The notes below the pieces were generated by a model. It ran no database searches, had not been told where the DNA came from, and saw only the letters and a list, made by a program, of their open reading frames with translations. The position numbers and the translations under genes were made by a program. Positions 3,697 to 20,141 of a stretch of 20,141 nucleotides of DNA are shown piece by piece. The first letter of the stretch is position 1; every line of letters starts with the position of its first letter. This stretch comes from Neoechinorhynchus agilis. Taxonomy: Eukaryota > Animalia > Acanthocephala. The stretch is from positions 1 through 20,141 of the forward strand of contig JBMGUZ010000052.1 in NCBI GenBank assembly GCA_051530055.1, written 5' to 3'.

Positions 3697-3957
3697 TCTT
3701 TTCCCAACACCCTCATGTTTATTCCAGATTTATTATCGAACGGAAAATGGGTGTTTTATTTCTTGCTTCAAGTTTTCGACGCCTTCGTCAGGAATCTTTT
3801 CTTCGGTTATCTGAAAAGGAATCAGAGGAGACGGACAGCGTTGCCCTCCTCTGATTCCTTTTCAGACAACCGAAGAAAAGCTTCCTGACGAAGGCGTCGA
3901 AAATTTGAAGTAACAAACAAATAAAACACCCATTTTCCGTTCGATAATAAATCTGGA
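3697..3957. mobile_element. Palindromic non-autonomous element (foldback/MITE-like), copy 1
   Basis: 3723-3957 is a ~235-bp near-perfect inverted repeat (tccagatttattatcgaacgg...ccgttcgataataaatctgga) with a ~15-nt loop and a ~26-nt left extension. A second copy lies at 8144-8412. Confidence 0.8.
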
Positions 3958-4142
3958 GTAGTTTTTGATTAGAAAAAAGAACAGCATTGCACCAGCTCCG
4001 TCGTGCGCTCAGTTTAGTCTGCTACTAAAGCAAGGAATCCATTCCTATTATTCGTGTCTATCTTGCCAGCGCTGGCTGCGTAAAAGCAGAAATATATGTG
4101 ACAAGTCGTGATTCCTTCTCCTTAACGCAGGATTAGCAAAAG

Positions 4143-7100
4143 ATGGCTCCTGGCGCTGAAAAGGATAAAAGTGCAAAAAACAATGGTCAACGCGATTTGA
4201 AGGCGACGTGGAACAAACTGGTTTTGTACTTCAACGCACCTCAGAATGCTTCTTCACTCGCAGTGTTCAGAATTTTATTCTGTAAGGAACACACATAAAT
4301 AACTTAGTGACCCAACGAAGCCATTAGATTCCCTCATGGTGCTCGATATACCTTATGAACGGTCATTTGCATACGTTGACTATGCATACGGATCAAAATC
4401 TGACCCTTGCAAATTCCCTTTATTCGACTCGCTTAAACCACTATCCGTGATGGCAGCATCCATGATCTACATTGTCATGCTAACGGGTAAATCCATTTTG
4501 CTCAAAATTTAAAATACTATTAATAAAAATTTAGGTGCTATCGGTTCATTGGCCGGTATCTTGTATGAAGCCAGCACAATCATGTTCGCTGGAGCGTATT
4601 GGCTCATCTTTATTCAAGATAAAACGTCTTGGAATAATCATTCCTATCTTTACGGTCTAATTGGTTCAATGTTTTGCTTATTTGACGCCAACAGCCAATG
4701 GTTAGCAGTGTGTGTGTGTCAATTCTTTAAAACAGTAATTAAAGATTATGTCTTGGATTTTTTCCCGAAAACAAACTCCTTCCTATCTTTACAGTCTAAT
4801 TGGTTCAATGTTCTGCTTATTTGACGCCAACAGCCAATGGTTTTCATAGTGTCGATTCTTTAAAACAGTAATTAAGAATTATGTTTTGGATTTTTTTATT
4901 GAACGTACTTTTAGAAATTTTCAACTAGATTTAGTTCTTGAGTATAAGTCAGAAAATCGGTGACATTTTTTCTTTACAATCTTAGCAAAAGTACGAAATA
5001 GAACTGTTTTATACCATGAAGTGTTATTTCTTTCAATAGGACGTAGTTACTGAAACGATAAAAAATCTTAATTGTATTTGTAAAAAAACCAATTCACTCA
5101 ACCAATAATCTTGTTAAATGCCATCAATAATTGGCACATTAGAAATTTTGCAATCGCTTTAAAATGAGCCGAAGACTCAATGATTTCCGACTTTGTTCGC
5201 TCTAAAGGTCAGTGGACAGTTATTTGAGGAAATACAAGAACAAGAGTGTCCCAAGGTGGAATTACTTTATCCTACGATCTCAGGTCTGATTGCGAGGTTT
5301 AATCACTGCATTACAACAACGATGAACCATCTTAGATATTTTTAGTGTATTTCATTGCTGGATTGAAGAAAACGGAGACTGATTGGCTAAACGGATATTC
5401 ATGTTCGGACATTTTCGGACATTGGGTATTCACACCGTTCAGGTAGGCGAGGAAACATTGGGTTTAAGATTGAGTTCTTTAGATTTTTCCTTTCGGATGA
5501 ATATATTTCATGGTTCGTCGTTCACATCTGTGGGTTCGTGATTGATTTTTTCGTCGGATTTCTACTGCTCTACCGACCAACACGGGTCTTTGCAACCGTG
5601 GTAGTGTCGAGCTTCCATTGTATGAATTCACAAATCTTCAGTATTGGTAATGCAAACACTTAATTTTAATAACTTTTAACTCACTATTGAAAATAGGAAT
5701 GTTTCCTTTTGTAATGTTAGCATCAACTACTGTATTTTACGGTTATTCGTGGCCTCTTCACGTCTTTGGTAAGGATAACGAATACTATCAAGAGGAAGGT
5801 AGTTTAAATATCAATTGCATTTACGAAAAGAAAGATCCGGAGGTATGTAAGCCATTGAAACGCACATATTAAAAAAATAAATATAGACCGATCACTCAAA
5901 GGCCGCCTACACTCCAGTAAGAAGAAGACACCACTATTTTTCAGCTGGAATTATATTCTATCTTTTGCTGCAATTCACGCTGCCATATTCACATTTTATT
6001 ACGAAGGTTAGTCGCAAGTCTAAGAACTTCTCACTCCGTAGATTGAGCCTTATTTGAATTATCTTTTTTAAGCTCAAATGTGCGATTTCCGTCCCCATGG
6101 AATACCCATAATCACTCATATTTGTCAAGATCACTTGTCATAGCTCTCAAAAATTGATAGTAGTTGTCAGCATCTTGGTCTTCAATCACAAATTCTCAGA
6201 TAATAATACTTAGCAAAGCTATAAGAATAGCACGTTTATTGGTAATAGCACTCGAGTTCACAGTTGTTCAAAAAATGCGAATCCGTTAGGGTGGTAAAAT
6301 CCGGTCGGAGGGATGTCCATTCGGGTGGGACTATCCAGTCGAGGGAGGTTTGTTCGGGTGAGAATGTGTCCGTTCGTTTGAGAATATCCAATTGGAAGGT
6401 CCATTCTCGTGGGAATTGGTGTTTATTGTTTGCAGGAACGCTTTCAAGGTTGGTCTTTCCTCAGGGTTTCAAATCGCAAACGTTATCAATAATGTCAGTA
6501 ATTTGGTGATATCCCCAATAGAAGATTATTTATTTTCATCCAAATCGAAAATGATTGGCGTTATTGTTGGTGAAAGTAATTCGGTGATATCCCCAATAGA
6601 AGATTATTTATTTTATCGAAAATGTTTGGCGTTATTGTTGGTGTCAATAATTCGGTGATATCCCCAATAGAAGATTATTGATTTTCATCGAAATCGAAAA
6701 TGATTGGCGTTATTGTTGGTGAAAGTAATTCGGTGATATCCCCAATAGTAGATTATTGATTTTATCGAAAATGTTTGGCGTTATTGTTGGTGTCAATAAT
6801 TCGGTGATATCCCCAATAGAAGATTATTGATTTTCATCGAAATCGAAAATGATTGGCGTTATTGTTGGTGAAAGTAATTCGGTGATATCCCCAATAGAAG
6901 ATTATTGATTTTCATCGAAATCGAAAATGATTGGCGTTATTGTTGGTGAAAGTAATTCGGTGATATCCCCAATAGAAGATTATTGATTTTCATCGAAATC
7001 GAAAATGATTGGCGTTATTGTTGGTGCCGCATTTTGCCTTGAGGTGTTCCATTTTCGAGCATTTGTACACTTTACCATTTTAGAGGAAATATTTTAGGAA

Positions 7101-9502
7101 CTATACGAAGAAAGTTTTTTATTTAAAAAATAGCTGTTTGACCCTTCAAAAGAACCCCTACGATATCACGTTAAATTTAAAATAGGGATATAATAGTTGG
7201 ACAAACGGTCTATATGGTTACTCTTGGGATATGATGGTGCACAGTTGGCACACTCAACATATAAAGATAACCTGCTTAGACAAGAAAACAAACAAGACGT
7301 TCTTTATTAAAAAAGACAGTTACACGAGCACTTCTCGATGGAGTTCTCATGCTGACATGATAAAGCAACATGCTGTTTGCATTGCTAGACAGCTAGAGAA
7401 AGATAACGATAAAAAGAATGGACGATATGCAATCTATATGGATATTTGGCGATCAATGAATCACCGATTTGAACAAAGACAAGTCAATCCTCATGTGGAC
7501 ATCTCAACTGCTCCATGGAGTCCCTTTCATCCAAGTGAATGGATAATCCCATTATATCGGAATCTGTCCCATTGGAGACATAAGATTGAATTTATCAGAA
7601 AAGAAGTGGAAAACATGGATAACGGGATTCAAACTACGTTTGTTGCCGATGCTCCTGGTATGCATCAATGTTCGCATTTTAAGCTTCTACTTGTGTTGTT
7701 CAATAGGTCTCACTCTAACCAACTTTATAGAAAATGAAATATCCGCATTATTGGTAGTGCTTGATGGTGAAGTTACAGTTGAAATAATTCAAGATGAAAC
7801 GAATATTACGCTCAACCCGAGGACACATCCATTCAAAATTCCATCAGGACAATTCCATAATGTGCATGTAACTTCCGACTACCCAGCCTGCTATTACTAT
7901 GCGTTTCGAAACACAACTTTTGATATGGTTCAAAAACTTCATGACGGTTTATTTAACTATTCACTGGAAATCTTGAATCATACTAACCACGAAGAAAATA
8001 GCGGTAATGTAACTCTTTGTTTTTTCTTGCTATCTATTTTTTACTTCTAAACAGCGTTTGAAGTGCTCGCCTTAAAATTATGGACCTGTCTTTAATTGGA
8101 TTTTTCTCTCCTTTGAATCTAAATGTCCAATATAGTTCCATAACAGATTTATTATCGAACGGAAAATGGGTGTTTTTTTTATTTCTTGCTTCAAATTTTC
8201 GACGCCTTGCGTCTTCGTCAGGAAGCTTTTTCGGTTATCTAAAAGGGAATCAGAGGAGGGCAACGCTGTCCATGTCCTCTGATTCCTTTTCAGATAACCG
8301 AAGAAAAGCTTCCTGACGAAGGCGTCGAAAATTTGAAGTAACAAATAAATAAAACACCCATTTTCCGTTCGATAATAAATCTGGAATAAAACATGAGGGT
8401 GTTGGGAAAAGAGGCTTTCCATAATTTTATGTCCAATATAGTTTTACAGTTACTTTTATCACTTTAACTCAGTAGTCGTTCTTATCGCTGTGATCTCTGT
8501 GATTGATACAAACTGCAACTTTCTGAGAAACTCATAATAGGAAATATTATTTAAATCATTGAGAGAAAATCGTTCGGGATGATAATCGATCACATCGTAG
8601 AAAACTTTCAAGCAATGGCCGATGTAATAGTTCAATAAAATACTTTTTTGCCGGGGGATTATCGTAGGTGCCACGCTACCGGGGAATGTGCAAAGGAATT
8701 ATCGTTTAGAAGTCTACACCCGCGGTAAATGATTTCTTTTATTAAAGACGTTCTGCGAACTTAGTCGGGTCCATCATCAGTTCTAAAATACAACAACCCG
8801 ACGAGGTTCGAAACGTTTTTTATCCAAATAATCATTTACCGGGCGTAGACTTAAACAATAAATTCCACTTAGAAAAGGATTCTTGGGCGCTGTTTTATCA
8901 ACTGTAGCATATTCTCAATCCATCATCCTTTAATGTTACGTTGTTTCTTGGCAATCTCGTAAAAATTAAAGCATAAGATGATCTCTATCTACTCTTAATC
9001 ATTTTTACGATTTTGTTGAAATCCTTTTGCTTTCATAGAGTCCATCGTTCATGAGTTATTTTTTGTTAAAACCCGTATAGGACAATCAAGGGCCGAAATA
9101 TGGCGCAATATTTTGCCAGCACTTAGTGAAATCCCATTGAGTGATTTTCTGAATGAAGATGAAAATGAACTATTGGAAGTAATCACAGATAATGGAACTG
9201 ACGCCAGTCTCGATAATGAAATAATGGTCATGCTGAACGAGACAATAAATGCAAAATTAGAAGATGAGGAACTAAATGTTTTAAATTTTTTGGAAAACGT
9301 GATGGAAAACGTGGTGGATTTCTTTAAAAATAAGCTTCTAATTTACAAAAGATGGTAAGATCGTACGTTATAAGAGCATCCACAATCTCAAACTGATTTG
9401 TTTAGCATGTATGTGATCTATTACACTATACAATGTATTTTTACCGGAGATTCTTTGGAGAATAAACTTTTCGAAAACTATGATATGCTCCTTAGTGGAT
9501 AG
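4143..9502 (+). CDS. GGCX: Vitamin K-dependent gamma-glutamyl carboxylase, 12 exons, ~752 aa
   Basis: Exons 4143-4281, 4328-4486, 4535-4700, 5208-5283, 5336-5442, 5483-5646, 5697-5842, 5887-6006, 7186-7657, 7707-8003, 9039-9354, 9406-9502 (all GT-AG, 2259 nt, in frame). Motifs match vertebrate GGCX: SLAVFRILF, DKTSWNNHSYLYGL, YFIAGLKK (catalytic Lys pair), [44 protein letters not shown], WSPF, and both Cys of the known disulfide (DPCKFP, HAVCIA). The C-terminal DFFKNKLLIYKRC...GDSLE resembles human RFLLRKLYVFRRS...GRPSLE. AATAAA at 9531-9536. The 8003-9039 junction is the least certain. Confidence 0.92.
4641..4897 (+). repeat. 139-bp-period tandem duplication of the GGCX exon 3 end plus intron start
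   Basis: ttcctatctttacrgtctaattggttcaatgttytgcttatttgacgccaacagccaatggtt...ttctttaaaacagtaatta...ttatgtyttggatttttt occurs at 4641 and again at 4780. Confidence 0.9.
6288..6430. repeat. GC-rich short-repeat tract in GGCX intron 8, related to 3357-3437
   Basis: Degenerate repeats of cgggtgagaat/tccggtcgg ending in gtgggaattggtgtttattgtt. Confidence 0.45.
6497..7026. repeat. Minisatellite of about 7 units (78-bp and 71-bp variants) in GGCX intron 8
   Basis: Unit core ggtgatatccccaatag starts at 6505, 6583, 6654, 6732, 6803, 6881, 6959 (spacings 78, 71, 78, 71, 78, 78, then a partial unit). Confidence 0.95.
8144..8416. mobile_element. Palindromic non-autonomous element, copy 2, inside the GGCX 3' intron
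   Basis: Arms are nearly identical to 3723-3957. The loop and outer extension (aataaaacatgagggtgttgggaaaaga) are reverse-complemented relative to copy 1. Flanked by ttccataa (8136-8143, 8417-8424) and atgtccaatatagtt (8123-8137, 8429-8443) direct repeats. Confidence 0.8.
8695..8866. repeat. Diverged ~170-bp hairpin element
   Basis: ggaattatcgtttagaagtctacacccgcggtaaatgatt pairs with aatcatttaccgggcgtagacttaaacaataaattcc; inner cgaacttagtcgggt pairs with acccgacgaggttcg; ~25-nt loop. Confidence 0.7.
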
Positions 9503-10394
9503 ATGTATGCGTAGTTGAACAGTGTGAGAAAATAAAACATCTTCTTAAATGGATTGATGAAGTTTTTAAGACAATTAAAAGACTTTTTCAATGAATAGGA
9601 ATTAATTTAGGAATTTTAACGCTATTGGTGGGATTAGGTCAACAAATAACTCTGGTTAATCATATTCGTCCTTCTTGGTCTGGGAGAGCTCAATGAAAAA
9701 TGTACAATCAGTATTCTATAATTGAAACATTATCAAAATATGCGAAAATTTATTATTATGCGATCTTTGATTTTATTTGATTAGATACCAATATTCTGCA
9801 GGTAGCCACTATTAGTTCGCTAGCGGCGCGTGCGGAATCTTTCTAACTCAATGGAGCCCCCATATTTTCGTTTCCTCTGTTATATGGAACGCAATTATTT
9901 TGTAGGTCCATCAATCTATCCTGCAAAAATTATGAAGTTTCATTTTCATCGTTGAAACCTAGGGATTTAACGGACTAGTGCAAAGGAAAAGGTAATCCGT
10001 TGGAGAATGCAGATTAGCGAAAGCTATGAACGTGCTACGTTATCAAAATTCAAATTGCTAATGTTTACATTCAATAAAATGCAATAAAGTTTAGAATCGA
10101 TAAATTTTGATTACAGTGCAGAACTCATGTTTTGGATAGGAATTGAGGATTCGCGATTTAAATAATGACGAAAAGGAAATTTCACGCATTCAGATTTCGC
10201 AATTCAAAAATACATGGATTGGGTTGCAAACAAAAAAGACTTGAACTATTTATTGGTCTTCTAAATAACGCAAATTTAATTCGTAATCTTGTAATTATTT
10301 TTTTATTTTCATTAGCAAACCTGTTTGTTATTTGGATGACTACTGAGCATCAATCTAAGCCTTAGGATCTGAAGTATTCACAATTCAAAATACA

Positions 10395-12632
10395 ATGAAT
10401 GAATCTGGATATCAAGGAACATTTACACTAAAGATCTCAGAGTTCTTCGAAAACGAAAGCGTATTACCCAAATGGAAGTTCAATTTTGCTCAAAAAGCCG
10501 TTGCCAGCACCATAAAGATCATCAACATTACATTCCTCGTCCTCTTAATCTTCTTCAGCAATTTATGGATATTTAAATCCACCAGCGAAAAAATAGATTT
10601 CGCCATTCGGATTCGCTCAAACGAAGATGCATTTAAGTTTATTGACAATATTCAAAGCCAAAAAGGAACAACTTTGTGTTGGCTTGGGCGAATCGACGTC
10701 TTGAGCGAATTCTACAGTATCCAATTGAACAAAATCACCCTATCAATATTCATCGTCTCAATTATCTGGACGTTTTTACTCGCAATTCGTAAGCGAAGAT
10801 GTCAAACAAAAGAGTCGGTTCTTTTCAATCCATTCAGCAAAACAAATAGACTTGAATCAGCTTGCGTATATGGAATCCTGGCAATAGAAATCCTGCACTC
10901 CTTTGAGAAGATTTTGATCGTGACAACAAGAACGCCACAAAGCGGTCCATTACTGGATCTTTTTCGACAAATAGGAATCGTTATTCTGATTGGAACAAGA
11001 TATTTGCCGATTATTATGACATTGGAACTAAATCCAAATGATGTCGTGTGTTCCGGTTCATCGGCTTTGTTCATGTGGACGGAAATGTTCTTTCAAACAG
11101 CACGAGATGCTCAATGTGGTCCCACGGAGCAATCAATAATCCAAATTAAGAAACGAATAGCCGCAATTTCTTCAAACGTGACGCTTAGTCCAGAAAACGT
11201 TAATGGGTTATTTGGCGATTCCGTTCCTCTATCATCAAGTGCCGTAAAGTTCAGAATTCTCAGACAACTTCCTTATTACATATTCGCGTCCCTGCTCGCA
11301 AAAAATCTCTCAACACTCTTCGTGTTCAATATTCTCAGGCTTCGAAGAACCCAGCTATCGCAAATAAGCAATTTTACATTTGTGAAATGGTTTGTGAAAC
11401 GAAACAATGAAGAAAATGAGATAAATTACGTTCAGTGCCTGTTCAAAAAGAAAGATCGCAATAGGAAACAATCTGGGTTTAAGTTCTCAAAGCAGATAAT
11501 TAACCTATGGGCCATTGGATTCGCTTCAATCCACTACTTTACATTCTGGACCATTCAGAATGTAGAAATGCTGACGGATGGAATTTTTCATTTTGTGCAT
11601 TCCTTGATGCTTCCTCTGGTTAATTTTCTTAGTTTTGAGGCCAAGGCAAGAAAGGAAAGTCTTATGGATGAAGTTGTCCGAATTAAACTTCACCGGGATT
11701 TCCGAATTCTGGCAATAATTTGCAGTATTGCTTGTACCATTCAATCGATAGAAGCGATGAGAAGTTATAAAAGACACATGATATCCGCTTTTAAAGGACG
11801 TTTTGAGGAAATCCCAAAACGAAAGCGGTCCGTAAACGCCAACACAATCATAAAAGCTGTTCATTTTCCCGGTTTCATGATTGGATACTTGATATGGGGA
11901 TATTTGATCCTCGTGATGAGTGCGTTTATCCTTTGGCTTCTTATCAGAAGTCTCATCGAGGCACCGATTCCGATCGAAATTGTTCTAAGATGGATCCTTC
12001 CAGTGCTGATCCTCTTCATTCTGAAACTGGTACTCGTTAAACTAATGAGTCGATCAATATTCACAACCAACGAAAATGGAAATCCGTCAATCGAGAACAT
12101 ACAACTCCTTTATGCGTTCAATTTCTTCAATTTCTTCTTTGATTGTTTCATTGGGATGGTTGTTTGTGTTTGGAGAGTCGCTCAGACTACCATTGCGGCT
12201 CTCGTGTTCATGACGAGAATTGATCGAAGTTCGCTAGGACGCGGCCTTGAATGCTACGATAAAGGATTTGCGGCTTATGCCAGTTGGATTCATCTTGAAT
12301 CTCAGCAAACGAATCCGGTGATGCTGGTCTTCTGCCAAATCGTCTCCGGCAAAATCAAAGAACGGCGTTCAATGAGGAACTTTTCTAATGAAAAACTCGC
12401 TCCAAAGCATGGAGCAAATACAAAACTCATTGTCGAGCAAGCAATGGAAAATGTTTCAAGGCGACGACGAGCTCAATTCAGATTTTGTTTGTTGAAAACA
12501 TTAACAAATAATCCTTGGATGGCGCAGTTGAGGAAGCAAAGAAGTCTTGGGGCTCCATCAATATACAAAGAAGATTACAGTCTTCTTTATCAATCAACCA
12601 GTGATAGTGCTGAAATATCAAATTGTAGTTAG
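10395..12632 (+). CDS. STRA6L: STRA6 / STRA6-like (RBPR2) family multipass membrane protein, intronless, 745 aa
   Basis: Single 745-aa ORF with many hydrophobic segments. Family-like motifs: HFPGFMIGYLIWGY, DRSSLGRGLECYDKGFAAYASWIHLESQQTNPVMLVFC (cf. STRA6 DPGY..Y...L..E...SHP.M..FC), and a C-terminal RRRAQFRFCLLKTLTNNPWMAQLRK helix (cf. STRA6 [23 protein letters not shown]). Confidence 0.85.
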   Translation: MNESGYQGTFTLKISEFFENESVLPKWKFNFAQKAVASTIKIINITFLVLLIFFSNLWIFKSTSEKIDFAIRIRSNEDAFKFIDNIQSQKGTTLCWLGRIDVLSEFYSIQLNKITLSIFIVSIIWTFLLAIRKRRCQTKESVLFNPFSKTNRLESACVYGILAIEILHSFEKILIVTTRTPQSGPLLDLFRQIGIVILIGTRYLPIIMTLELNPNDVVCSGSSALFMWTEMFFQTARDAQCGPTEQSIIQIKKRIAAISSNVTLSPENVNGLFGDSVPLSSSAVKFRILRQLPYYIFASLLAKNLSTLFVFNILRLRRTQLSQISNFTFVKWFVKRNNEENEINYVQCLFKKKDRNRKQSGFKFSKQIINLWAIGFASIHYFTFWTIQNVEMLTDGIFHFVHSLMLPLVNFLSFEAKARKESLMDEVVRIKLHRDFRILAIICSIACTIQSIEAMRSYKRHMISAFKGRFEEIPKRKRSVNANTIIKAVHFPGFMIGYLIWGYLILVMSAFILWLLIRSLIEAPIPIEIVLRWILPVLILFILKLVLVKLMSRSIFTTNENGNPSIENIQLLYAFNFFNFFFDCFIGMVVCVWRVAQTTIAALVFMTRIDRSSLGRGLECYDKGFAAYASWIHLESQQTNPVMLVFCQIVSGKIKERRSMRNFSNEKLAPKHGANTKLIVEQAMENVSRRRRAQFRFCLLKTLTNNPWMAQLRKQRSLGAPSIYKEDYSLLYQSTSDSAEISNCS

Positions 12633-12963
12633 ATTTATTTATGCCAATTATTATATCCATTAGTTTAGTATATAATATATTTATCAGTTTATTTTTGAAT
12701 CGGTTAAATTGTTTTCGAATTTGTGTTATCTTTTTAAGTAAAACTTCAAGGATAGGTCTCTGTCTCCGATCGGTCCTCATCTCATGGCGCCCATGTTGTT
12801 TTAATCCATTAATAATTTGGTCACAAAAAGGAGTAACTTATTTGTTTCGAGTAAAGAAATGCTATATAAAAATTACGATGGGAAAAATCCAGCAAATATT
12901 ATCAAAAAGAGAACTCTAAAACTTCATTTAATTACTTATAAAACTAAAATCGCACTCTCGCAA

Positions 12964-13036
12964 GCCCGCGTGGCCTAATGGTTAAGGCGTCGGTCTCCTA
13001 AACCGAAGATTCTGGGTTCAAGTCCCAGCGCGGGTG
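12964..13036 (+). tRNA. trnR: tRNA-Arg, anticodon CCT
   Basis: Cloverleaf: acceptor GCCCGCG/CGCGGGT, D-arm GCCT-AATGGTTA-AGGC, anticodon stem TCGGT/ACCGA with loop CT-CCT-AA, T-arm CTGGG-TTCAAGT-CCCAG; 73 nt, no intron. Confidence 0.95.
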
Positions 13037-13260
13037 TCGGCGGATGCTCTCCGTTTCAGAGAAAACACTTCCATTTCGTCGCTGAGCGGAAAACATTTAT
13101 TTTCCCATTGAACAAAATTCTCCAGGGTCTCCTTTTGTTGGGTTCAAGTCCCAGCGAGCTGTTGGCTGGTATTTGTCTATCAAAAAACACGTTTATTTTG
13201 TCATTAAACGAAAAATATTTATTTCCCCGTTGAACCAAATCCTCCTGAACCTCTTTTCGT
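13013..13260. repeat. Diverged 126-bp-period tandem duplication joining the tRNA T-arm, spacer and dUTPase 3' end
   Basis: tgggttcaagtcccagcg occurs at 13013 and 13139. atttattttcccattgaacaaaattctccagg (~13095) parallels atttatttccccgttgaaccaaatcctcctga (~13217, dUTPase stop region). Confidence 0.7.
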
Positions 13261-13662
13261 CGAGTCTAACTCATAAACTTGAATAGGATCAAATATTCCA
13301 ATCTTTTCTATAATGAGCTGGGCGATTCGGTCTTTTATTCTGACTTTGAAATCTTCTTTACCAAAATTGAACAATAGGACACCGAGTTCCCCTCTATAGT
13401 CAGAATCTACGACGCCGGCACCTACGTCGATTCCGAATTTAAGAGCAAGTCCTGAACGCGGTGCCAAACGGCCGTAGTAGCCGTCCGGAATGCAGACAAC
13501 GAGATCCGTTTTTATTAAAAGACGCCCACCGACTTCAATTGTCGCATCTTCAGCTGAGTAAATATCCAAACCCGCAGAATCGGGACTACCTCGAGTTGGA
13601 AGAGTCGCATTGTCTGATTTTAGGAAAAATCCAAGTCCACGATCATTAGCCTTGTGATTCAT
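13219..13662 (-). CDS. DUT: Trimeric dUTP pyrophosphatase (dUTPase), intronless, 147 aa
   Basis: All five dUTPase motifs are present: AGLDI, GRLAPRSG, GVVDSDYRGE, DRIAQLI, RGSGGFGSTG. Confidence 0.95.
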   Translation of the reverse strand: MNHKANDRGLGFFLKSDNATLPTRGSPDSAGLDIYSAEDATIEVGGRLLIKTDLVVCIPDGYYGRLAPRSGLALKFGIDVGAGVVDSDYRGELGVLLFNFGKEDFKVRIKDRIAQLIIEKIGIFDPIQVYELDSTKRGSGGFGSTGK

Positions 13663-14129
13663 CCAAATTCAGCTCTTAAACGCGATCATTTCCAAAAATC
13701 AATCGTTAATCTTCAAGCGCGCGGTATTTTCGATGTAATAAATCATAAAAATGGTTTAAAATTGTCGAATTTTATCAATATAATCACTCATCGATTCAGT
13801 TCTTATTCGGCGATCTTGAGACGCTACTCTGAGCGGCGATATACCTTTAACGGTAGCATTCTCATCAATAGCATCGAAAATTTATTCAGAACGATCTAAA
13901 ATTTTTGTTTCTTCAATTCCAAACATCTACCAATCGCCAAAATGTACATTTTTTTAAGCTATAAAACTTTTCTGAAATCTATCGCAGTAAAGAATATTTT
14001 CTTCTAAGAAAAATTCATCTTTAGCATCAACTTTTTAGCACAGAACTAATTTTAAAAGTTTATTTTCATATATTTCGAAAAATTAAAAAGAAATGAAAAT
14101 GGATAATTATATTCGATTCATTTTCTATT

Positions 14130-16207
14130 GCACAAAAGCCCTCGGAAGTGCTTCGCTTAAAATAGTTGATATTTTCATCGAGGGCTCCATTGGCAATTTG
14201 GTTACACATCTTTTCATCGGCGCCTCTTTGTGTGTTTTGTCCAAGAAAAATGGTGGGATTCGTCCCATCGCCATTGGCTGCACTTTGCGTAGGTTAGCCG
14301 CGAAAGTTTTATGCAGGAGAATCTCCGATGAAACGGGAGAATTTTTAGGATTCTGTCAGTTAGGTTGCTGCACTCCTTGTGGAGTTGAAGCGGTCGTGCA
14401 TGCTCTGCGAAAATTTATCCCCCAAAGAACAAAGAAAACAGCAATTCTGAAAGTAGATTTTAAAAATACTTTCAATACTTTGAAAAGGGAAACAATGTTA
14501 AAAGCGATTGAGGATGTCGTCCCAAAGGCTTACCCCTATTTCTGGAGAGCAAATGCTAAACATACGCCACTGCTGTACAACGACAAAATAATTTGGTTGC
14601 AGAGTGGTGTACAACAGGGAGATCCACTCGGCCCCATAGGCTTCTCCGTCGCAGTAAATGATCTTGCCCATTCAATGTTTTCTCCTTTCAACGCTTGGTA
14701 CTTGGACGATGGCACACTCGGTGGCGATCCAAGTGTTGTTTTGAGCGGCCTTCAAAGGATCGTGAATGAAGCTGACCGCTTGGGGATAGAAATAAATCCC
14801 CAAAAATGCGAACTTCTCATCCTGAACGCAACTGAAAACGAGCGCTCTCAAATCTCTAGCGATTTTGAATCAGTTGCTCCTGGTCTAGGTTTGATCACCC
14901 TTGACCAGCTCACACTCCTCGGGAGCTGGGTTCTTGCTGAGAATGTTGCGAAGGACCTGCGCGCACAAATCCCGAAAATGGAATTGCTCTGCGGCCGAAC
15001 TTCTGAGCTTTCGGCACATTAGGGTCTCTTCTTGATCAAGAATTGCCTCTATATGCCAAAATTGCTTCATAAGAGCAGCTCCATGTTTCGGAGAAGACAA
15101 ATTGTTAGGAGAGCTCGACGGGGTAATTCGTAAGCAGCTGGAACATATATTGAATGTCAAATTTTCTGACACAGGTTGGCGACAGGCTACTTTTCCCACG
15201 ACTTATGGTGGTTTGGAAGTTCGCACCACTTCAGACGTCGCTTTACCTGCCTTTCTCTCCTCTTGCCGGGCAAGTAAAGTCTATGTCGATGCCACTTTAG
15301 GCATACCAGTGAAGGATTTGATCTTTGCCACGGGATTATCTCAATGGCATCAATTGACAGGCATCAACCAGCTCCCCGCAAATGAATGCAAACAGTCGTC
15401 TTGGGACATTCCTCTTGTTTAGAAGATTCACAACTCTTTCAAAGATCTTCTGGATGAGGTGTCTCAGGTCCGGCTGTTAGCCTGTTCCACGAAGGAGTCG
15501 GGAGCGTGGTTGAATGCTCTCCCTGTAGGGAAACTTGGAACTCTCCTTGCTGACTCAGTCGTCAGGATCGCCGTATCCTTGAGATTAGGCCTGCCGATTT
15601 GCACCCCGCATCGCTGCCGCTGAGGCACTATAGTGGACTCTTCGGGGAGACACGGTCTCATATGCAAGACGTCAGCTATTTCCAAGGCATGCTGAAATCA
15701 ATGCCATTCTGAGAAGGACTCTAAAAACGCTTTCCCTCCCAAACATTCTAGAACCCACTAATCTTTGTAGATTAGATGATGGCGTGACCGTCTTTCCTTA
15801 TCGGGAGGGAAAATGTTTGTTGTGGGATGCAACTCGTGTGGACACGTTGGCAAACTCCAACATCAGCCACTCGAAAAAAGGTCCAGGAGGAGAGGCGACG
15901 GCTGCAGAGGATCAGAAATGCTCAAAATACAGGGAGCTAATCCGAAATTACCATTTTGTCCCCTTCGGTGTGGAAACGTACCTTGGGAGGGTCGGCACTA
16001 GCCCTCCTCGTGAAGGACTTGGGGAAACGAATTCACGCGGCGACTGGAGAGCCAAGATCGACGTCGTTCTTGACGCAAAAAATAAGCATTGCGGTGCAGC
16101 GGGGCATTGCGGCTAGCATTTTGGTCAGCGCCGATGAATAGGAGCGGAGAGGTTGTAAACAATGCATAGATAAATTGTATACAACTAAATTTATGATAGA
16201 AAAAAAA
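14130..16207 (+). mobile_element. 5'-truncated, decayed non-LTR retrotransposon, CRE-like clade (RT, CCHC knuckle, restriction-like endonuclease)
   Basis: RT motifs GGIRPIAIG, KVDFKNTFN, GVQQGDPLGP, WYLDDG (14699-14710), GIEINPQKC. Downstream GGL, SGAWL, LRLG, C-x-[stop]-...H...C knuckle (TGA at 15621), FPRHAEIN, LLWDAT, K.SKY, FVPFGVET and SIAVQRG follow the CRE-type layout. Stops at 15020, 15420 and 15621, several frameshifts, and an A-run at 16200-16207. The 5' boundary is approximate. Confidence 0.85.
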
Positions 16208-16382
16208 TATTTCTTTTATTTTTACAAGAGGTAATTTTTTTATGTTAACACAATCACTTGGAATTTGCTTTTCGATTTCTATGAATTAATTTTAATGCAT
16301 GTTTTTTTTATTAAGACACCCAAATTTCACTAATTATAAAACGAGCACATTTATTTCTTAAGCTTAAAACTAACCAAAGCGT

Positions 16383-16907
16383 TCAATTGAGACCAGTACA
16401 CACCACCATTCCAGTTTCGTCAAACTTTCCAGTCAGTTGTTTGTTTGCAATGAGTTCTTCTATGAGGCTTTTTGTTTCCTCTACGGACGTCTGCATTGCG
16501 TTGGCGACGATTTCAATTGACACTTTGTGATGTATTCTAAAGTATCTTTCCAAAAAAACTCTTTTTGCATTGTCCACGAAATCTTTCAGTTTTGGTTCCA
16601 GCGTTTCGTCCGACTTTATGAATTCGACTGATTCTGCTAAATATTTACCAGCTTCTTTAAAATCGAATTGAACAAATATACAAATGAAAAAATGATGGAT
16701 GGGATCGTTTCTAAATGCGATCCTTCGTTGCTGATGGTGATAAAAGTCTGCTATCGTGTTGATAAGATCAAAATTCTGACCACATTGAATCATTGCATCG
16801 ATTGCGTATTCGACAGTCATTTTTGGACAGAACTGATAGTGATTGAGAGTAAAAGTTTGAACCGAGAGTTGACTTATATACTGGGTTTCGTTAGTCTTCG
16901 CAGCCAA
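16383..16907 (-). CDS. Divergent truncated eIF3e/Int6-like PCI-domain protein, left-arm copy (first ATG at 16820, 145 aa)
   Basis: DPIHHFFICIFVQFDFKEAGKYLAES...DFVDNAKRVFLERYFRIHHKVSI..VAN aligns with eIF3e [23 protein letters not shown]...[27 protein letters not shown]. Intronless. AATAAA (minus strand) 28 nt past the stop, 16350-16355. The ORF-track start is TTG. Confidence 0.72.
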   Translation of the reverse strand: MAAKTNETQYISQLSVQTFTLNHYQFCPKMTVEYAIDAMIQCGQNFDLINTIADFYHHQQRRIAFRNDPIHHFFICIFVQFDFKEAGKYLAESVEFIKSDETLEPKLKDFVDNAKRVFLERYFRIHHKVSIEIVANAMQTSVEETKSLIEELIANKQLTGKFDETGMVVCTGLN

Positions 16908-17076
16908 TCAGAGTTCAGGATTTCCCTTGTTGGGTTGCACATTGCCAAAAACCGGAAATTCCCACCAATACCCGCAGCGATGCCATGCCTGCAAATTCAA
17001 AAATTCGCTGCGGGTATTGGTGGGAATTTCCGGTTTTTGGCAATGTGCACCCAACAAGGGAAATCCTGAACTCTGA

Positions 17077-17601
17077 TTGGCTGCGAAGACTAACGAAACC
17101 CAGTATATAAGTCAACTCTCGGTTCAAACTTTTACTCTCAATCACTATCAGTTCTGTCCAAAAATGACTGTCGAATACGCAATCGATGCAATGATTCAAT
17201 GTGGTCAGAATTTTGATCTTATCAACACGATAGCAGACTTTTATCACCACAAGCAACGAAGGATCGCATCCAATAACGATCCCATCCATCATTTCTTTAT
17301 TTGTATATTCGTTCAATTCGATTTTAAAGAAGCTGGTAAATATTTAGCAGAATCTGTCGAATTCATAAAGTCGGACGAAACGCTGGAACCAAAACTCAAA
17401 GATTTCGTGGACAATGCAAAAAGAGTATTTTTGGAAAGATACTTTAGAATACATCACAAAGTGTCAATTGAAATCGTCGCTAACGCAATGCAGACGTCCG
17501 TAGAGGAAACAAAAAGTCTCATAGAAGAACTCATTGCAAACAAACAACTGACTGGAAAGTTTGACGAAACTAGAATGGTGGTGTGTACTGGTCTCAATTG
17601 A
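17077..17601 (+). CDS. Divergent truncated eIF3e/Int6-like PCI-domain protein, right-arm copy (first ATG at 17164, 145 aa)
   Basis: Mirror of 16383-16907 with four amino-acid differences (Q/K, F/S, R/N, G/R). AATAAA at 17629-17634. Confidence 0.72.
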   Translation: MAAKTNETQYISQLSVQTFTLNHYQFCPKMTVEYAIDAMIQCGQNFDLINTIADFYHHKQRRIASNNDPIHHFFICIFVQFDFKEAGKYLAESVEFIKSDETLEPKLKDFVDNAKRVFLERYFRIHHKVSIEIVANAMQTSVEETKSLIEELIANKQLTGKFDETRMVVCTGLN

Positions 17602-17667
17602 ACGCTTTGGTTAATTTTAAGCTTAAGAAATAAATGTGCCTCGTTTTATGATTAGTGGAATTCGGGT

Positions 17668-17855
17668 GCCGTCCGGAATGCAGACAACGATATCCGCTTT
17701 TATTTAAAGACGCCCACCGGCTTCAATTGTCGCATCTTCAGCTGAGTAAATATCCAAACCCACAGAATCGCGACTACCTCGAGTTGGAGGAGTCGCATTG
17801 TCTGATTTTAGGAAATATCCAAGTCCACGATCATTAGCCTTGTGATTCATCCAAA
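17668..17855 (-). pseudogene. dUTPase pseudogene fragment (N-terminal ~61 codons)
   Basis: Copy of 13480-13667 with 8 substitutions in the coding part, including TTA>TAA at 17704-17706. Its 3' part is missing where it abuts the palindrome arm. Confidence 0.92.
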
Positions 17856-17944
17856 ATCACATACATAAGATTCATTCGAAGGAAGACATTGGATAATTAA
17901 CCGACATAATTTATGTGTAGGAATAATTATAATTCGAAAGTAAT

Positions 17945-18580
17945 AAAGTTATATCACCGCTGTCCGTTTAAGCGCTTCTTTCCAGGAGTAAGGGAGTTTG
18001 CTCAATCTCTTGAAAAGTGCTAATGTACTTTAATCGTTATTCGGGGGTCATCCTATAGAGTAAAAAACTAGGCCCGAGATTGCTCAAGAGTTCCAAATGT
18101 TTCTGGTATCATGAGAGCCGAGTCCAAGTTAAAATGCTCTTCTGGATTTAAGCTTAGCGACAGGTAAGAGTTTTTTGAATTTGCGGAGGTCGTAGGGTGT
18201 ATCCCAAGATTGTGATCTTATTAGAAACTGACGACGAGGTCAGATTAAGAAATTGTTTATAAAATTCGCGAGCACGTTGTTTATCAAAAATCGACTAAGG
18301 TTTTGAAATAAATTTCGTCCTTAAAGGGTTGAGTGACAGACCCATCTGAAAGAGAATAGAATTAAGACATGACAGTAAATCTGAGAGTTTCTTTATAGCT
18401 GCCAGGTAGTTCGTTTCCTTGATCACCGCATTGAAATCGTCTGCATATAGGGTCAATTCATTGCAGACTGCCGTTCTTAAGCAGAAACTGGGAAGCCAAT
18501 CAGAAGAGGATGAGTGAGAGTGGGGACACTTGCGGAACTCCTTTTGTTTGATGATAAATCTTGTGAGATGTGTCATCTTG
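17945..18580 (-). mobile_element. Decayed LINE-type reverse transcriptase fragment (distinct from the CRE element)
   Basis: GVPQ-SPLSLILF (~18500-18541, frameshifted), LYADD (18436-18447), GLSLNPLRTKFI, then ITILGYTL. Multiple stops and frameshifts. Confidence 0.8.
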
Positions 18581-18789
18581 ATAAAAAAATTGCTTAGACT
18601 TCATAGTGTTGTGCACTCGTGCAACTAGTTTATTAGGGAAGTGAAAATAACGAAGGATCTATATTATAAAAGCGATATCAATATTATCAAAAGCCTTAGA
18701 GATATCGAAGGAAATTAAAATGTTCATTGACTTCTGATTCGAATTAAAATTAGTGATAATTTCAGACAAAGCCGTCTGAACGGATTTAT

Positions 18790-19830
18790 GGGGTAAAAAA
18801 TGATGGCATCTGCGCTCAATGCAGTCATTATTTGAGGCAAAAAGTAAAAAACGCTTTAGCTAGTGATCGTTCGAAGTTTGAACCAGCGAGTTCTGAGTGG
18901 ATATGGGACGAACATCTCCACCGGCTACAACCTTTTCTCCTTCGTTTTTGCTGAGAAAAATACGCTTCGAGAGGTTCATATGAGCAATATGACCATAACT
19001 TTAGCGGTGTCGGCCACATTGACCTTGTCGAGTACATTCGTGGATTTCGAGCATATTGATGAGCACTTATCGGAAATTTTATCTCTTGATCTCTCCCATT
19101 GAACAATATCAGAGGCTTAAAGATCATGGCGTCTTGGTTTGACAGGTAAGAAAACTGCATATAATGCGGGTAAGCATTCTTCAGAATGAAAGCCACAAAG
19201 AGTTTTCCCCACTTTGTTGAGGCCTCAGGTTTTAATCCATGATTCAGCCGCTTGCTGCCAATTTTATGGACAACGCGCCACCGTTGAGAAGATTTTTGAA
19301 GGAATGATTTGATCCTACCTCTATCCTCGTTCAGTTGGAAACGAGCTCTACAAGGCCACTATAATGCTGACCAGAATTTAATTCCTCCCGTAAAGGCAAA
19401 GAGCACGCGGGGTTTCATCGAAGCAATTAATTTGCTTTAGTTTGGAAGTCACTAATGGCAGAAATTAAAAATTGTTTATCTCACAAAGTGTAGCATTCCT
19501 GTTGCTGGTAAAAAATAATTTTAAAGCCGTATTAAAAAAGATGAACGTTTGGGAATAATAGTTTAGGAGATTTTAATCAAAACTCCACACGATACCATCG
19601 TGGCCAGCTCTTCGGAAAAGGGATCTCTGGGAGACATCGAGTGGTCTAATTGCACATCTCCTCCTCCATAAGCATAGTTCCAAATAGGACAAAAAGAATG
19701 GCGACTGAAAGGTGAGGAAATAATGTCAATGGAATCGGTTGCCCTTATTACTGCACGCAGCCATTTCTGGATCATAAAAGTTTCCGAAGATAAAATCTAT
19801 CTCGGAAATGCAGCAAACAAAAATAGCCGA
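18790..19830 (+). other. Possible decayed coding relic of unknown family
   Basis: Protein-like stretches in plus frames are interrupted by stops and 1-nt shifts (DGICAQCSHY..., GVGHIDLVEYIRGFRAY / LMSTYRKFYLLISPIEQYQRLKDHGVL..., ITARSHFWIIKVSEDKIYLGN). No family recognised. Confidence 0.25.
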
Positions 19831-20141
19831 GACCTGTAGCTGGATTGAAAAAGTAAAAAATTAAAAAAGGGGAAACCAAAAAGGCCGCAAACAATTCAAA
19901 ACGTGAGAGTACCGCTTGCGTAACTTACAAGCAGAAAGCCATTGGACGGACGTTCATTGATCGCAGTTGAAAAAACTTGCAAATAACGAAAGACAATAAA
20001 CTGAATTGTCAACCCCGAAAGCAAAACTTACAAGCAATTATTCAACCCAAAACAATCCATAGGACACACACAAACTCACTAACGCTCGTACTGGAGAATG
20101 TCTTTTTGCGAACCTACTTCTTCCGGCATCGATGCTACGTC

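Follow-up and report, generated by a model that had tools for sequence, protein, structure and literature searches.

Gene-bearing palindromes are known mainly as huge structures of sex chromosomes, with kb-scale spacers and with arms which stay near-identical through conversion. At a smaller scale, the hsp-16 inverted duplications of C. elegans and the hsp70 87A pair of Drosophila are kb-scale inversions of small genes with divergent transcription and concerted evolution. They share a central promoter and comprise stress genes in one or two pairs. The window examined here, i.e., the whole stretch of DNA that was analysed (20,141 nucleotides), is the unplaced scaffold JBMGUZ010000052.1 of Neoechinorhynchus agilis (Acanthocephala). 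It contains a palindrome which, unlike hsp-16 and hsp70 87A, is amplified at least 6-fold and which carries a truncated translation-factor paralogue, here called mini-eIF3e.

A preliminary description had likened the locus to sex-chromosome palindromes, the large ones of primates and mouse (human Y P1-P8 and the X palindromes) being the closest counterparts. The likeness extends to inverted arms with paired copies of a multi-copy gene family, to arm-to-arm exchange with an occasional inversion of the centre (PMC3723533) and to genes preserved by selection (PMC8327919). Beyond this it fails. The arms of sex-chromosome palindromes exceed 10 kb (PMC5997626), whereas those of N. agilis measure 0.66-1.1 kb around a spacer of 24 nt. 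Arm identity is >99-99.9% in the former (PMC3723533, PMC8981503), yet only 90-97% in N. agilis, where the partner of an arm is usually less similar to it than some arm in another palindrome. Further, the N. agilis genes abut the centre and have a predicted mirrored promoter in common. The text and supplement of the genome paper contain neither a sex-chromosome statement nor an expression table (PMC12690905).

Two other systems bear comparison. Drosophila hpRNA loci (Nmy/Tmy) are likewise inverted duplications of gene-derived sequence in multi-copy, fast-evolving families (PMC10292708, PMC10317233). In them transcription runs across both arms and coding capacity is not required, whereas in N. 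agilis the ORFs are conserved, the predicted promoters point outward and no RNA-run contig runs across the palindrome centre (although contigs cannot prove absence). Head-to-head structures of Penelope-like elements in rotifers, the sister lineage in that comparison, also have inverted junctions with TATA motifs, and Penelope can amplify host genes (PMC3846280). In contrast, pLTR direct repeats, target-site duplications, a hammerhead motif and an element ORF are all absent from the N. agilis palindrome. We consider it probable that the locus is one copy of an amplified palindromic cassette of independent, outward-transcribed and selected mini-eIF3e genes, a cassette which originated once, was duplicated and underwent inter-copy exchange.

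Architecture of the palindrome in the window

The gene-bearing palindrome initially claimed at 16315-17670 is real. The left arm (16317-16980, minus strand) and the right arm (17005-17668, plus strand) are inverted repeats with 96.8% identity in a single gapped alignment, which contains 19 mismatches and 2 one-base indels. Illumina reads reject both indels, 17048 by 16 of 18 reads and 17639 by 12 of 12. The centre of symmetry is an asymmetric 24-nt spacer (16981-17004) common to all six palindromes, and in either arm the gene reads outward. A repeat search returned 16345-16935 and 17049-17639 (591 nt, 97%) and an inner pair, 16922-16980 and 17005-17063, which lie 24 nt apart. The inner ~250 bp of the window arms are identical to each other.

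Ancestrally, the arms were longer than first described, i.e., 1057-1115 bp in palindromes E and C. The left arm of the window runs on to 16206 and then, past a 2069-bp retrotransposon fragment, to about 13857. Its outer extension (16206-16316, minus strand), the 3' flank of the cassette, is found in other copies and is missing from the right arm of the window. Positions 13857-14136 (minus strand), a distal portion of the long left arm of the ancestral form, match both flanks of palindrome E, the left one with 99.2% identity and the right one, inverted, with 93.6%. At 17668 a 5' fragment of a dUTPase pseudogene with an in-frame stop (17668-17859, minus strand) truncates the right arm; this fragment adjoins the arm and is a direct repeat of 13480-13671. 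This arm/dUTPase junction recurs beside arms B_L and D. An exact sequence look-up found the dUTPase product not on record.

The retrotransposon fragment (14137-16205, plus strand) is a 5'-truncated non-LTR element (RVT_1, E=4e-16; A-tail at 16199-16206), the insertion of which interrupted the outer portion of the ancestral left arm. In arm A_R the same retrotransposon 3' end is present at the same site. The uninterrupted form 14136/TC/16206 is present in 38 WGS reads and in one contig from an RNA run. It was considered as an empty-site allele of the window locus and rejected, because the junction equals that of chromosomal locus E; therefore it shows only that the element is an insertion.

Copies, exchange and the status of the scaffold

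A search for other copies found five further palindromes (A, B, C, E and F) and one solo arm (D) on CM121341.1 at 4.2-4.33 Mb. The window spacer recurs in all five with 1-2 variant bases, and its orientation relative to the flanks varies. The copies are embedded in segmental duplications of 2.8 to at least 14 kb, the outer boundaries of which differ. Because the same asymmetric 24-nt spacer is present in all copies, the comparison indicates that the palindrome arose once and was then copied within segmental duplications. As a unit it would have been amplified to at least 6 palindromes plus the solo arm within ~130 kb.

In the five other palindromes arm-to-arm identity is 90.5-96.8%; four are at 90-94%, and E is at 96.8%. 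In the nearest-neighbour table the partner arm is the nearest relative for E_L only. The left arm of the window, W_L, is nearest to B_R and the right arm, W_R, to C_L with 98.6% each, versus 97.1% between W_L and W_R. The spacer is inverted between the collinear duplicates A and F, and the inner 225-250 bp are identical between the arms of E and between those of the window. The four-gamete test is failed by 62% of the informative site pairs (PHI-like permutation, p<0.0005). Because such a recombination signal makes a single tree meaningless, the arms were compared pairwise and block-wise. Judged by these comparisons, with their recombination signal and flipped spacers, the copies are mosaics of one another. 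Exchange among them is probably continuing, through gene conversion between copies and through crossover between arms, the latter flipping the centre.

The earlier proposal of a divergent gene pair kept by arm conversion survives in part. The genes are coding and under purifying selection (omega 0.12), the predicted central promoters are mirrored and highly conserved (pi 0.013) and arm-to-arm exchange does occur, as seen in the A/F spacer flip and in the identical inner ~250 bp. Conversion does not, however, keep the arms alike: W_L and W_R have their nearest relatives in B_R and C_L, and four palindromes reach no more than 90-94%.

The scaffold itself is a patchwork, the pieces of which match segments of the chromosome with 99.2-99.96% identity; it may represent an alternative haplotype, or its assembly may be wrong in part. 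This leads to the most serious alternative, which we regard as rather unlikely though deserving of attention: the window copy would not be an independent locus but an uncollapsed structural haplotype (e.g., from a B x E recombination) or a partly chimeric assembly of paralogues. Positions 17669-20141 share 99.92% identity with the sequence that flanks arm B_L; nevertheless, W_R, which adjoins them, has ~30 differences from B_L. Positions 13662-14136 match the left flank of E with 99.2% and 10208-12697 match the chromosome at 4.35 Mb with 99.96% identity. All variants of the window arms are found in other copies, save the two indels which the reads reject. WGS depth is ~25 on the shared right flank and ~14 on 13000-13599, versus at most ~33 expected genome-wide on the basis of a genome size of 46.2 Mb (PMC12690905). 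The assembly was generated in MaSuRCA hybrid mode from a pool of ~50 worms and several females (PMC12690905). Against this reading, WGS reads run without a break from 16200 to 17700 and show no joint in the middle, and four or more template switches in 1.5 kb are atypical of a long-read mis-join. Further, purge_dups was applied to the assembly (PMC12690905), and five chromosomal palindromes display the same architecture. If the reading were true, the 97% arm identity and the exact mosaic would not be fixed features of the genome; the cassette itself would still be real.

The mini-eIF3e genes, their predicted promoter and their product

Each arm holds a complete ORF with its own AATAAA diverging from the centre, as first described; in both arms it is an intronless 145-aa ATG ORF. 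The left gene (16383-16820 including the stop codon, minus strand; PCI E=8e-8) is the annotated protein P0004, the exact sequence of which is on record for scaffold JBMGUZ010000052.1. The right gene occupies 17164-17601 including the stop codon (plus strand; PCI E=1e-7). The poly(A) signals, at 16350-16355 (minus strand) and 17629-17634 (plus strand), are each located 28 nt past the stop codon. TATA, CCAAT and AATAAA signals are present separately for the gene of each arm. Each arm would constitute a compact intronless gene consisting of a TATA and CCAAT promoter, a leader of about 30 nt, a 438-nt ORF and AATAAA.

The estimate of ~15 coding differences between the window arms was accurate. There are exactly 15 differing nucleotides, 10 synonymous and 5 nonsynonymous (P=1e-4), which result in 4 amino-acid changes; omega (dN/dS) of this pair is 0.12. 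Family-wide, synonymous and nonsynonymous differences number 33 versus 35 (P=1e-7), and the means are 0.033 for dN, 0.178 for dS and 0.18 for omega. The ORF is kept in 11 of the 13 arms of the palindrome family and broken in A_R and C_R. An older subfamily with the same truncated architecture forms tandem repeats at 0.85 Mb (121-145 aa, 38-42% identical). Judged by these substitution patterns the mini-eIF3e genes are protein-coding and under purifying selection.

The region between the two start codons (16821-17163) is predicted to be a mirrored bidirectional promoter on account of motif positions and low diversity. It contains TATATAAG once per arm (16873-16880, minus strand; 17104-17111, plus strand), four CCAAT/ATTGG boxes (16904-16908, 16965-16969, 17016-17020 and 17076-17080) and a GGGAATTTCC-type decamer at 16954-16963 and 17022-17031. 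Across the copies, diversity (pi) is 0.013 in this central region versus 0.057 in the ORF and a dS of 0.18. We infer a promoter function from these features; conversion, instead of promoter constraint, could account for how alike the centres of the copies are. On the preferred reading, selection keeps the protein and, more strongly still, the central promoter. 'miRNA' matches at 16946-17039 were rejected; with 38 bits versus a gathering score of 100 they reflect only the hairpin shape of the centre.

The designation 'eIF3e-like' has been borne out: besides the Pfam PCI match, the closest solved-structure sequences and the closest folds are all eIF3e. The PCI domain (PF01399) is matched with 32.4-32.8 bits versus a cut-off of 22 (E about 1e-7), and the match spans residues 96-169 of the 174-aa ORF translation from a TTG start, i.e., 67-140 of the 145-aa protein. 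The closest solved-structure sequences (HMMER, about 35% identity) correspond to eIF3e residues 281-388 of the ~445-aa human chain, and alignment puts the 145-aa product on residues ~255-396. An AlphaFold2 model (pLDDT 93.9, pTM 0.89) presents helices followed by a helix-strand winged-helix pattern. Its fold matches in the PDB are all PCI subunits, headed by eIF3e chains (TMq 0.65-0.76); for the top PDB sequences and folds, which are eIF3e, identity is 30-35%, for CSN and proteasome-lid subunits ~14%. In a search of 1.84 billion representatives the named or checked full-length matches are eIF3e or proteins of eIF3e length.

Like eIF3e/INT6, eIF3k and CSN8, the N. agilis protein has a PCI fold with a winged helix, and both in sequence (30-38% identity) and in fold it is closest to eIF3e. 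Unlike eIF3e/INT6, it covers residues ~255-396 only, with neither the helical repeats of the N-terminus nor the helix of the C-terminus. The full-length architecture of ~400-450 aa (N-terminal eIF3e domain, PCI, C-terminal helix) is absent from the 145-aa product, in which the N-terminal two-thirds are missing. The partner gene lies immediately upstream of each mini-eIF3e gene; therefore, no further exons are possible. According to the model the genes encode a stand-alone PCI module of the eIF3e type, which comprises the last helical hairpins and the winged helix. None of the known small PCI subunits is its orthologue. Sixteen non-family matches were looked up, i.e., the six best beyond the subfamily of the window and ten others, seven of these short. 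Two of the six best are further N. agilis mini-genes; the matches from other sources all proved to be eIF3e, either full-length or partial, or else entries without a name, several of them located on short contigs. A canonical N. agilis eIF3e was not located in the protein searches, in which matches are ranked by score and a divergent orthologue could be buried.

Transcription, remaining alternatives and implications

The predicted promoters face outward; therefore, both mRNAs would be of the same sense and hence not complementary. On the left arm, contigs of three RNA runs extend over 16206-16865 at a depth of 4-18. On the right arm RNA-run contig coverage is thin, and depth is ~0 at the centre (16900-17200). 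These are fragmentary Logan contigs from runs presumed to be RNA, in which strand, start site and full-length transcripts are not visible. No contig crosses 16900-17200, bearing in mind that contigs show presence and cannot prove absence. At the 3' end of the upstream retrotransposon RNA-run depth falls from 26-102 (3.9 in X2) to 0-8.

These data bear on the second reading of the preliminary description, a hairpin-RNA/endo-siRNA locus. In the present case a transcript crossing the two arms would form ~650 bp of dsRNA, to be diced into siRNAs that silence mini-eIF3e paralogues. A read-through RNA of 16315-17670 would indeed be able to fold in this way (-1162 kcal/mol with 648 mirror pairs, versus about -315 for shuffles), and the mini-eIF3e family is multi-copy, as targets of hpRNAs often are (PMC10292708, PMC10317233). 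Small-RNA libraries of N. agilis were used in a previous study (PMC12256650). The reading is nevertheless disfavoured, to the point of being very improbable: both ORFs are under purifying selection with 11 of 13 arms intact, the predicted promoters are central and outward-facing, AATAAA ends each arm, and RNA-run depth is ~0 at 16900-17200 and collapses at the end of the retrotransposon, with the proviso that contigs attest presence and not absence.

We give equally little credence to a mobile cassette, i.e., a foldback-type element with long inverted termini or Penelope-like self-priming carrying host genes. The head-to-head inverted copies with a TATA-bearing junction are indeed reminiscent of Penelope structures, through which families of host genes can expand in rotifers (PMC3846280), and retrotransposon debris flanks the palindrome locus. 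However, the outer boundaries vary among the copies, which sit inside collinear duplications of 2.8 to at least 14 kb, and the palindrome unit contains neither reverse transcriptase nor transposase. Constant termini, target-site duplications, direct terminal repeats of the promoter downstream of the gene and, within the window, a hammerhead ribozyme were all looked for and none was found, and a transposon or Penelope origin was rejected. A decaying pseudogene array, with ORFs intact merely through recent duplication and with A_R and C_R as the broken examples, is the least credible reading of all and strongly disfavoured by dN/dS, as dS between arms is 0.13-0.30 at an omega of 0.11-0.18, synonymous changes are in excess (P=1e-7) and the 38-42% identical subfamily retains the same length and fold.

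The amplified cassette of selected genes, which we prefer, raises the question of what the protein does. Its winged-helix edge would dock it into a PCI assembly, of which eIF3 is the likeliest, where it would act as an extra subunit, a substitute subunit or a competitor; the multi-copy status may serve dosage. Acanthocephalans and their seisonid relatives have been reported to be without the PCI subunits eIF3k, eIF3l and eIF3m, and without eIF3g (PMC12256650). The text and supplement of the genome paper mention neither eIF3 nor PCI (PMC12690905). That the PCI-only eIF3e paralogues are lineage-specific replacements, filling the winged-helix positions left empty in the PCI arc of eIF3, is a conjecture which we consider improbable as it stands. 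If it were true, the core of translation initiation would have been rebuilt, with palindromic amplification providing dosage and copy-to-copy amino-acid variation providing subunit diversity.

Here, a kb-scale and almost spacerless palindrome has persisted until its arms diverged by up to 10% (dS up to 0.3), and it was copied at least five times while still bearing selected genes and a predicted mirrored axial promoter. Such a locus offers a compact natural system in which to study how short palindromes avoid the instability known from model organisms, and it opens the interplay of conversion, crossover and selection to study at a small scale. The cargo is unusual as well, a docking domain of eIF3e alone, of which two old subfamilies have been retained. 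As several PCI subunits have reportedly been lost from the eIF3 of this parasite, the cargo provides a testable lead on the remodelling of translation initiation.

The palindrome and its gene pair

A repeat search of the window returned an inverted arm pair of 591 nt at 97% and an inner 59-nt pair with 24 nt between. In a single gapped alignment the arms (16317-16980 versus 17005-17668) are 96.8% identical, with 19 mismatches and two 1-base indels; the spacer occupies 16981-17004. The indels are probably residual assembly errors because Illumina reads contradict both (at 17048 in 16 of 18 reads, at 17639 in all 12). Each arm carries an intronless, ATG-initiated ORF of 145 aa, on the minus strand at 16383-16820 in the left arm and on the plus strand at 17164-17601 in the right arm. 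AATAAA follows 28 nt past each stop codon, the TATA motif TATATAAG lies about 55 nt 5' of each ATG, and CCAAT/ATTGG boxes are present in both arms. There are exactly 15 nucleotide differences between the ORFs, of which 10 are synonymous and 5 nonsynonymous; they result in 4 amino-acid changes. Thus, the preliminary description of a palindrome around a 24-bp spacer, with a complete ORF and its own AATAAA in each arm and about 15 coding differences, was accurate.

The designation eIF3e-like holds as well. The encoded protein, mini-eIF3e, passes the Pfam PCI threshold in a profile search, and residues 281-388 of mammalian eIF3e align with it at about 35% identity. An AlphaFold2 model from a 13-sequence alignment is confident (pLDDT 93.9, pTM 0.89); eIF3e chains lead its PDB fold matches (TMq 0.65-0.76 at 30-35% identity), followed by PCI subunits of the COP9 signalosome and the proteasome lid (about 14% identity). 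The protein covers approximately residues 255-396 of eIF3e, i.e., the final helical hairpins together with the winged helix, and is devoid of the N-terminal two-thirds and the C-terminal helix. Judged as an eIF3e orthologue it is eIF3e-like in sequence and fold, but not in full-length architecture. The promoter of the partner gene lies directly upstream, which rules out that the ORF is one exon of a longer gene. The protein may dock into a PCI assembly by way of its winged helix. The eIF3 subunits K, L, G, and M are reported to be missing in pararotatorians (PMC12256650). That the present PCI-only paralogues substitute for lost eIF3 PCI subunits is the most interesting open possibility, and an unlikely one.

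Amplification, exchange and selection in the palindrome family

Annotated relatives pointed to chromosome CM121341.1. A BLAST search with the unit over 72 kb of retrieved chromosome sequence uncovered five further palindromes, F (4.211 Mb), A (4.295 Mb), B (4.310 Mb), C (4.318 Mb), and E (4.327 Mb), plus a solo arm, D; W denotes the window palindrome, and _L and _R the left and right arms. All six palindromes have the asymmetric 24-nt spacer (1-2 variant bases) and the junctions in common; the inverted duplication therefore occurred once, and later copying took in the palindrome as a whole. Collinear duplications larger than the palindrome surround the copies, at least 14 kb at 96.5-97.4% for F/A, 2.8 kb for B/C, and 2.9 kb for A/C. 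The outer boundaries vary: W and B have 665-bp arms, A and F arms of about 775 bp, and E and C the longest at 1057-1115 bp. This is as segmental duplication predicts and unlike a transposon with fixed ends. A transposon origin was rejected; no hammerhead ribozyme turned up in the window, and the unit carries no element ORF. Amplification took place inside segmental duplications.

Exchange among the copies is reticulate. A block-wise comparison shows mosaics: W_L resembles B_R over its outer 400 bp and E at the centre; in W_R the outermost sites resemble B_L, and the sequence after them resembles C_L. Among 49 informative sites 62% of the pairs fail the four-gamete test, and a PHI-type permutation test for recombination yields p<0.0005. 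The flank adjoining W_R is 99.92% identical to that of B_L (2 mismatches in 2473 bp); W_R and B_L themselves differ at about 30 sites, and every variant is also present in other copies. If the scaffold is real, templated conversion would be far faster than mutation here.

The preliminary description had proposed a gene pair maintained by arm-to-arm conversion in the manner of sex-chromosome palindromes. This stands as far as a selected coding pair and arm-to-arm exchange are concerned. The collinear duplicates A and F share one spacer variant, yet the spacer runs in opposite directions relative to their flanks, and within E and within the window palindrome the innermost 225-250 bp of the two arms match exactly; by these comparisons exchange between arms occurs too. 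Maintenance of the arms by conversion fares less well. The window arms are not nearest relatives (W_L is closest to B_R and W_R to C_L, each at 98.6%, versus 97.1% for W_L against W_R), and in the whole family only E_L has its partner arm as nearest relative. Arm identity, 96.8% in E and 90.5-93.8% in the other chromosomal palindromes, falls well short of the >99% which defines conversion-maintained sex-chromosome palindromes (PMC3723533, PMC8981503).

The ORF is uninterrupted in 11 of 13 arms and broken in A_R and C_R. Intact family copies have a mean dN of 0.033 and dS of 0.178 (dN/dS 0.18), the window's two arms a dN of 0.0145 and dS of 0.126 (dN/dS 0.12). Synonymous versus nonsynonymous changes number 33 versus 35 among intact copies (P=1e-7 against neutrality) and 10 versus 5 in the window pair (P=1e-4). 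An exhaustive representative search identified two stand-alone relatives in this genome that are far more divergent, at 38-41% identity (121 and 144 aa). They belong to an older subfamily at about 0.856-0.860 Mb of CM121341.1 (fetched piece L007, 7896-11710), where three 1271-bp units in tandem, 93-100% identical to one another, each hold a 144-145-aa gene; the diverged 121-aa gene is head-to-head with the first unit, and the DNA palindrome is absent from this locus. The truncated architecture is thus old and kept in two subfamilies, which argues strongly for a functional protein.

Nucleotide diversity across copies is lowest in the 5' leader/promoter/centre (0.013) compared with the ORF (0.057) and the 3' flank (0.038). 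This fits constraint on a putative shared bidirectional promoter; conversion may contribute. Within the most conserved part of the central promoter lies a mirrored decamer, GGGAATTTCC/GGAAATTCCC, at 16954-16963 and 17022-17031, which adjoins a CCGGAA ETS-like core, is kept in nearly all copies, and fits the Rel/NF-kappaB consensus.

The scaffold and its neighbouring sequences

The protein of the left arm has a database record under scaffold JBMGUZ010000052.1 (20,141 bp); the window is this entire unplaced scaffold of GCA_051530055.1. The N. agilis genome (46.2 Mb) was built with a hybrid assembler from a pool of about 50 worms and single females (PMC12690905). By its matches the scaffold is a patchwork of chromosome segments: 10208-12697 corresponds to 4.3517 Mb (99.96%), 13662-14136 to the left flank of palindrome E (99.2%), and 17669-20141, reversed, to the flank of arm B_L (99.92%). 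The junction 14136/TC/16206, carried by 38 WGS reads, represents locus E without the retrotransposon fragment. WGS depth is about 25 in the shared right flank and about 14 in the dUTPase region, i.e., at or below the genome mean of at most about 33-fold (1523 Mb read/46.2 Mb), which suggests that the scaffold and its chromosomal counterpart do not represent two fixed loci. The flank combination is that expected from recombination between inverted arms of B and E, so the scaffold may plausibly be an alternative structural haplotype derived from the pooled DNA. The hybrid assembler may also have partially mis-tiled the scaffold. The cassette architecture is independent of the scaffold; the exact 97% figure might depend on it.

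The 2.5-kb segment 10208-12697 (piece L008, 9814-12303) holds an entire 745-aa RBP_receptor (STRA6-like) gene, and flanking sequences on scaffold and chromosome are unrelated on both sides; it reflects either duplication in the very recent past, an alternative haplotype or a join made during assembly. Between it and the dUTPase gene lies a tRNA gene (12964-13036, plus strand, Rfam 71.5 bits). The dUTPase gene (13219-13662, minus strand) is intact, intronless, 147 aa long (Pfam E=1e-40), and without annotation in the assembly. A 192-bp 5' fragment of it (13480-13671) is repeated directly to the right of the palindrome at 17668-17859, 95% identical and with an in-frame stop; the fragment also recurs beside the chromosomal arms B_L and D. 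One RNA-run contig links 13628 to 17817 via this repeat and looks like an undisrupted dUTPase allele or paralogue. The outer left arm contains a 5'-truncated, A-tailed non-LTR retrotransposon fragment (RVT_1; 14137-16205, plus strand) of a multi-copy family abundant in RNA runs. Arm A_R (piece L001, about 9027-9065) has its last ~38 bp and A-tail at exactly the same site, which means either that an old shared insertion later lost its interior or that the site is a hot spot of insertion. Another reverse-transcriptase remnant is suggested by a YADD-like motif in a 93-aa ORF (18295-18576, minus strand); 17721-18759 is covered by 0.85-1.0-kb RNA-run contigs. Further away are two copies, 88-90% identical, of a ~250-bp self-complementary element (MITE or foldback-like; 3697-3960 and 8144-8412) with sub-threshold miRNA-like Rfam matches, and a tandem array (6493-7026, unit ~75-150 bp, copies 89-95% identical) within an intron-rich VKGC gene region.

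Transcription and the hairpin-RNA question

Coverage of 13000-18999 was drawn from one Illumina WGS run and, as Logan contigs, from three further runs presumed to be RNA. These three act like RNA: depth is 15-39 over the intact dUTPase CDS (13219-13662) and about 0 in neighbouring bins. The left arm from just inside the TATA motif to past the poly(A) signal (16206-16865) has a depth of 4-18, zero in run X4 over 16200-16599. The centre (16900-17200) is at about 0 and the right arm thin at 0-9, where contigs fitting both arms may be placed on one. Depth over the retrotransposon (16000-16199) is 26-102, 3.9 in run X2, and just past its 3' end (16200-16399) 0-8; across 13000-18999 nothing in the RNA-run contigs pointed to transcription running on into the palindrome. 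WGS reads span the palindrome centre, no joint being reported. Both genes would be transcribed outward from a mirrored central promoter.

The second earlier proposal, a hairpin-RNA/endo-siRNA locus in which read-through RNA of both arms folds to dsRNA, is highly improbable. Such an RNA would form a near-perfect 650-bp stem (-1162 kcal/mol versus about -315 for shuffles), yet both ORFs are conserved, the putative promoters face outward so that the two mRNAs share one sense and cannot pair, a separate poly(A) signal serves each gene, and RNA was not seen across the centre in the RNA-run contigs. Small-RNA data for N. agilis exist (PMC12256650). On present evidence this is not a hairpin-RNA locus; Drosophila hpRNA loci are alike in DNA shape and different in use.

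We conclude that this is a palindromic pair of selected, promoter-bearing genes with a single palindrome origin. Large sex-chromosome palindromes follow the same logic, but scale, identity and gene position are very different here. Alongside these and the hpRNA loci, small inverted gene pairs with a central promoter are the closest known systems. The finding is real: a gene-bearing palindrome that is small, has been amplified and carries an unusual cargo, an eIF3e-like PCI module.
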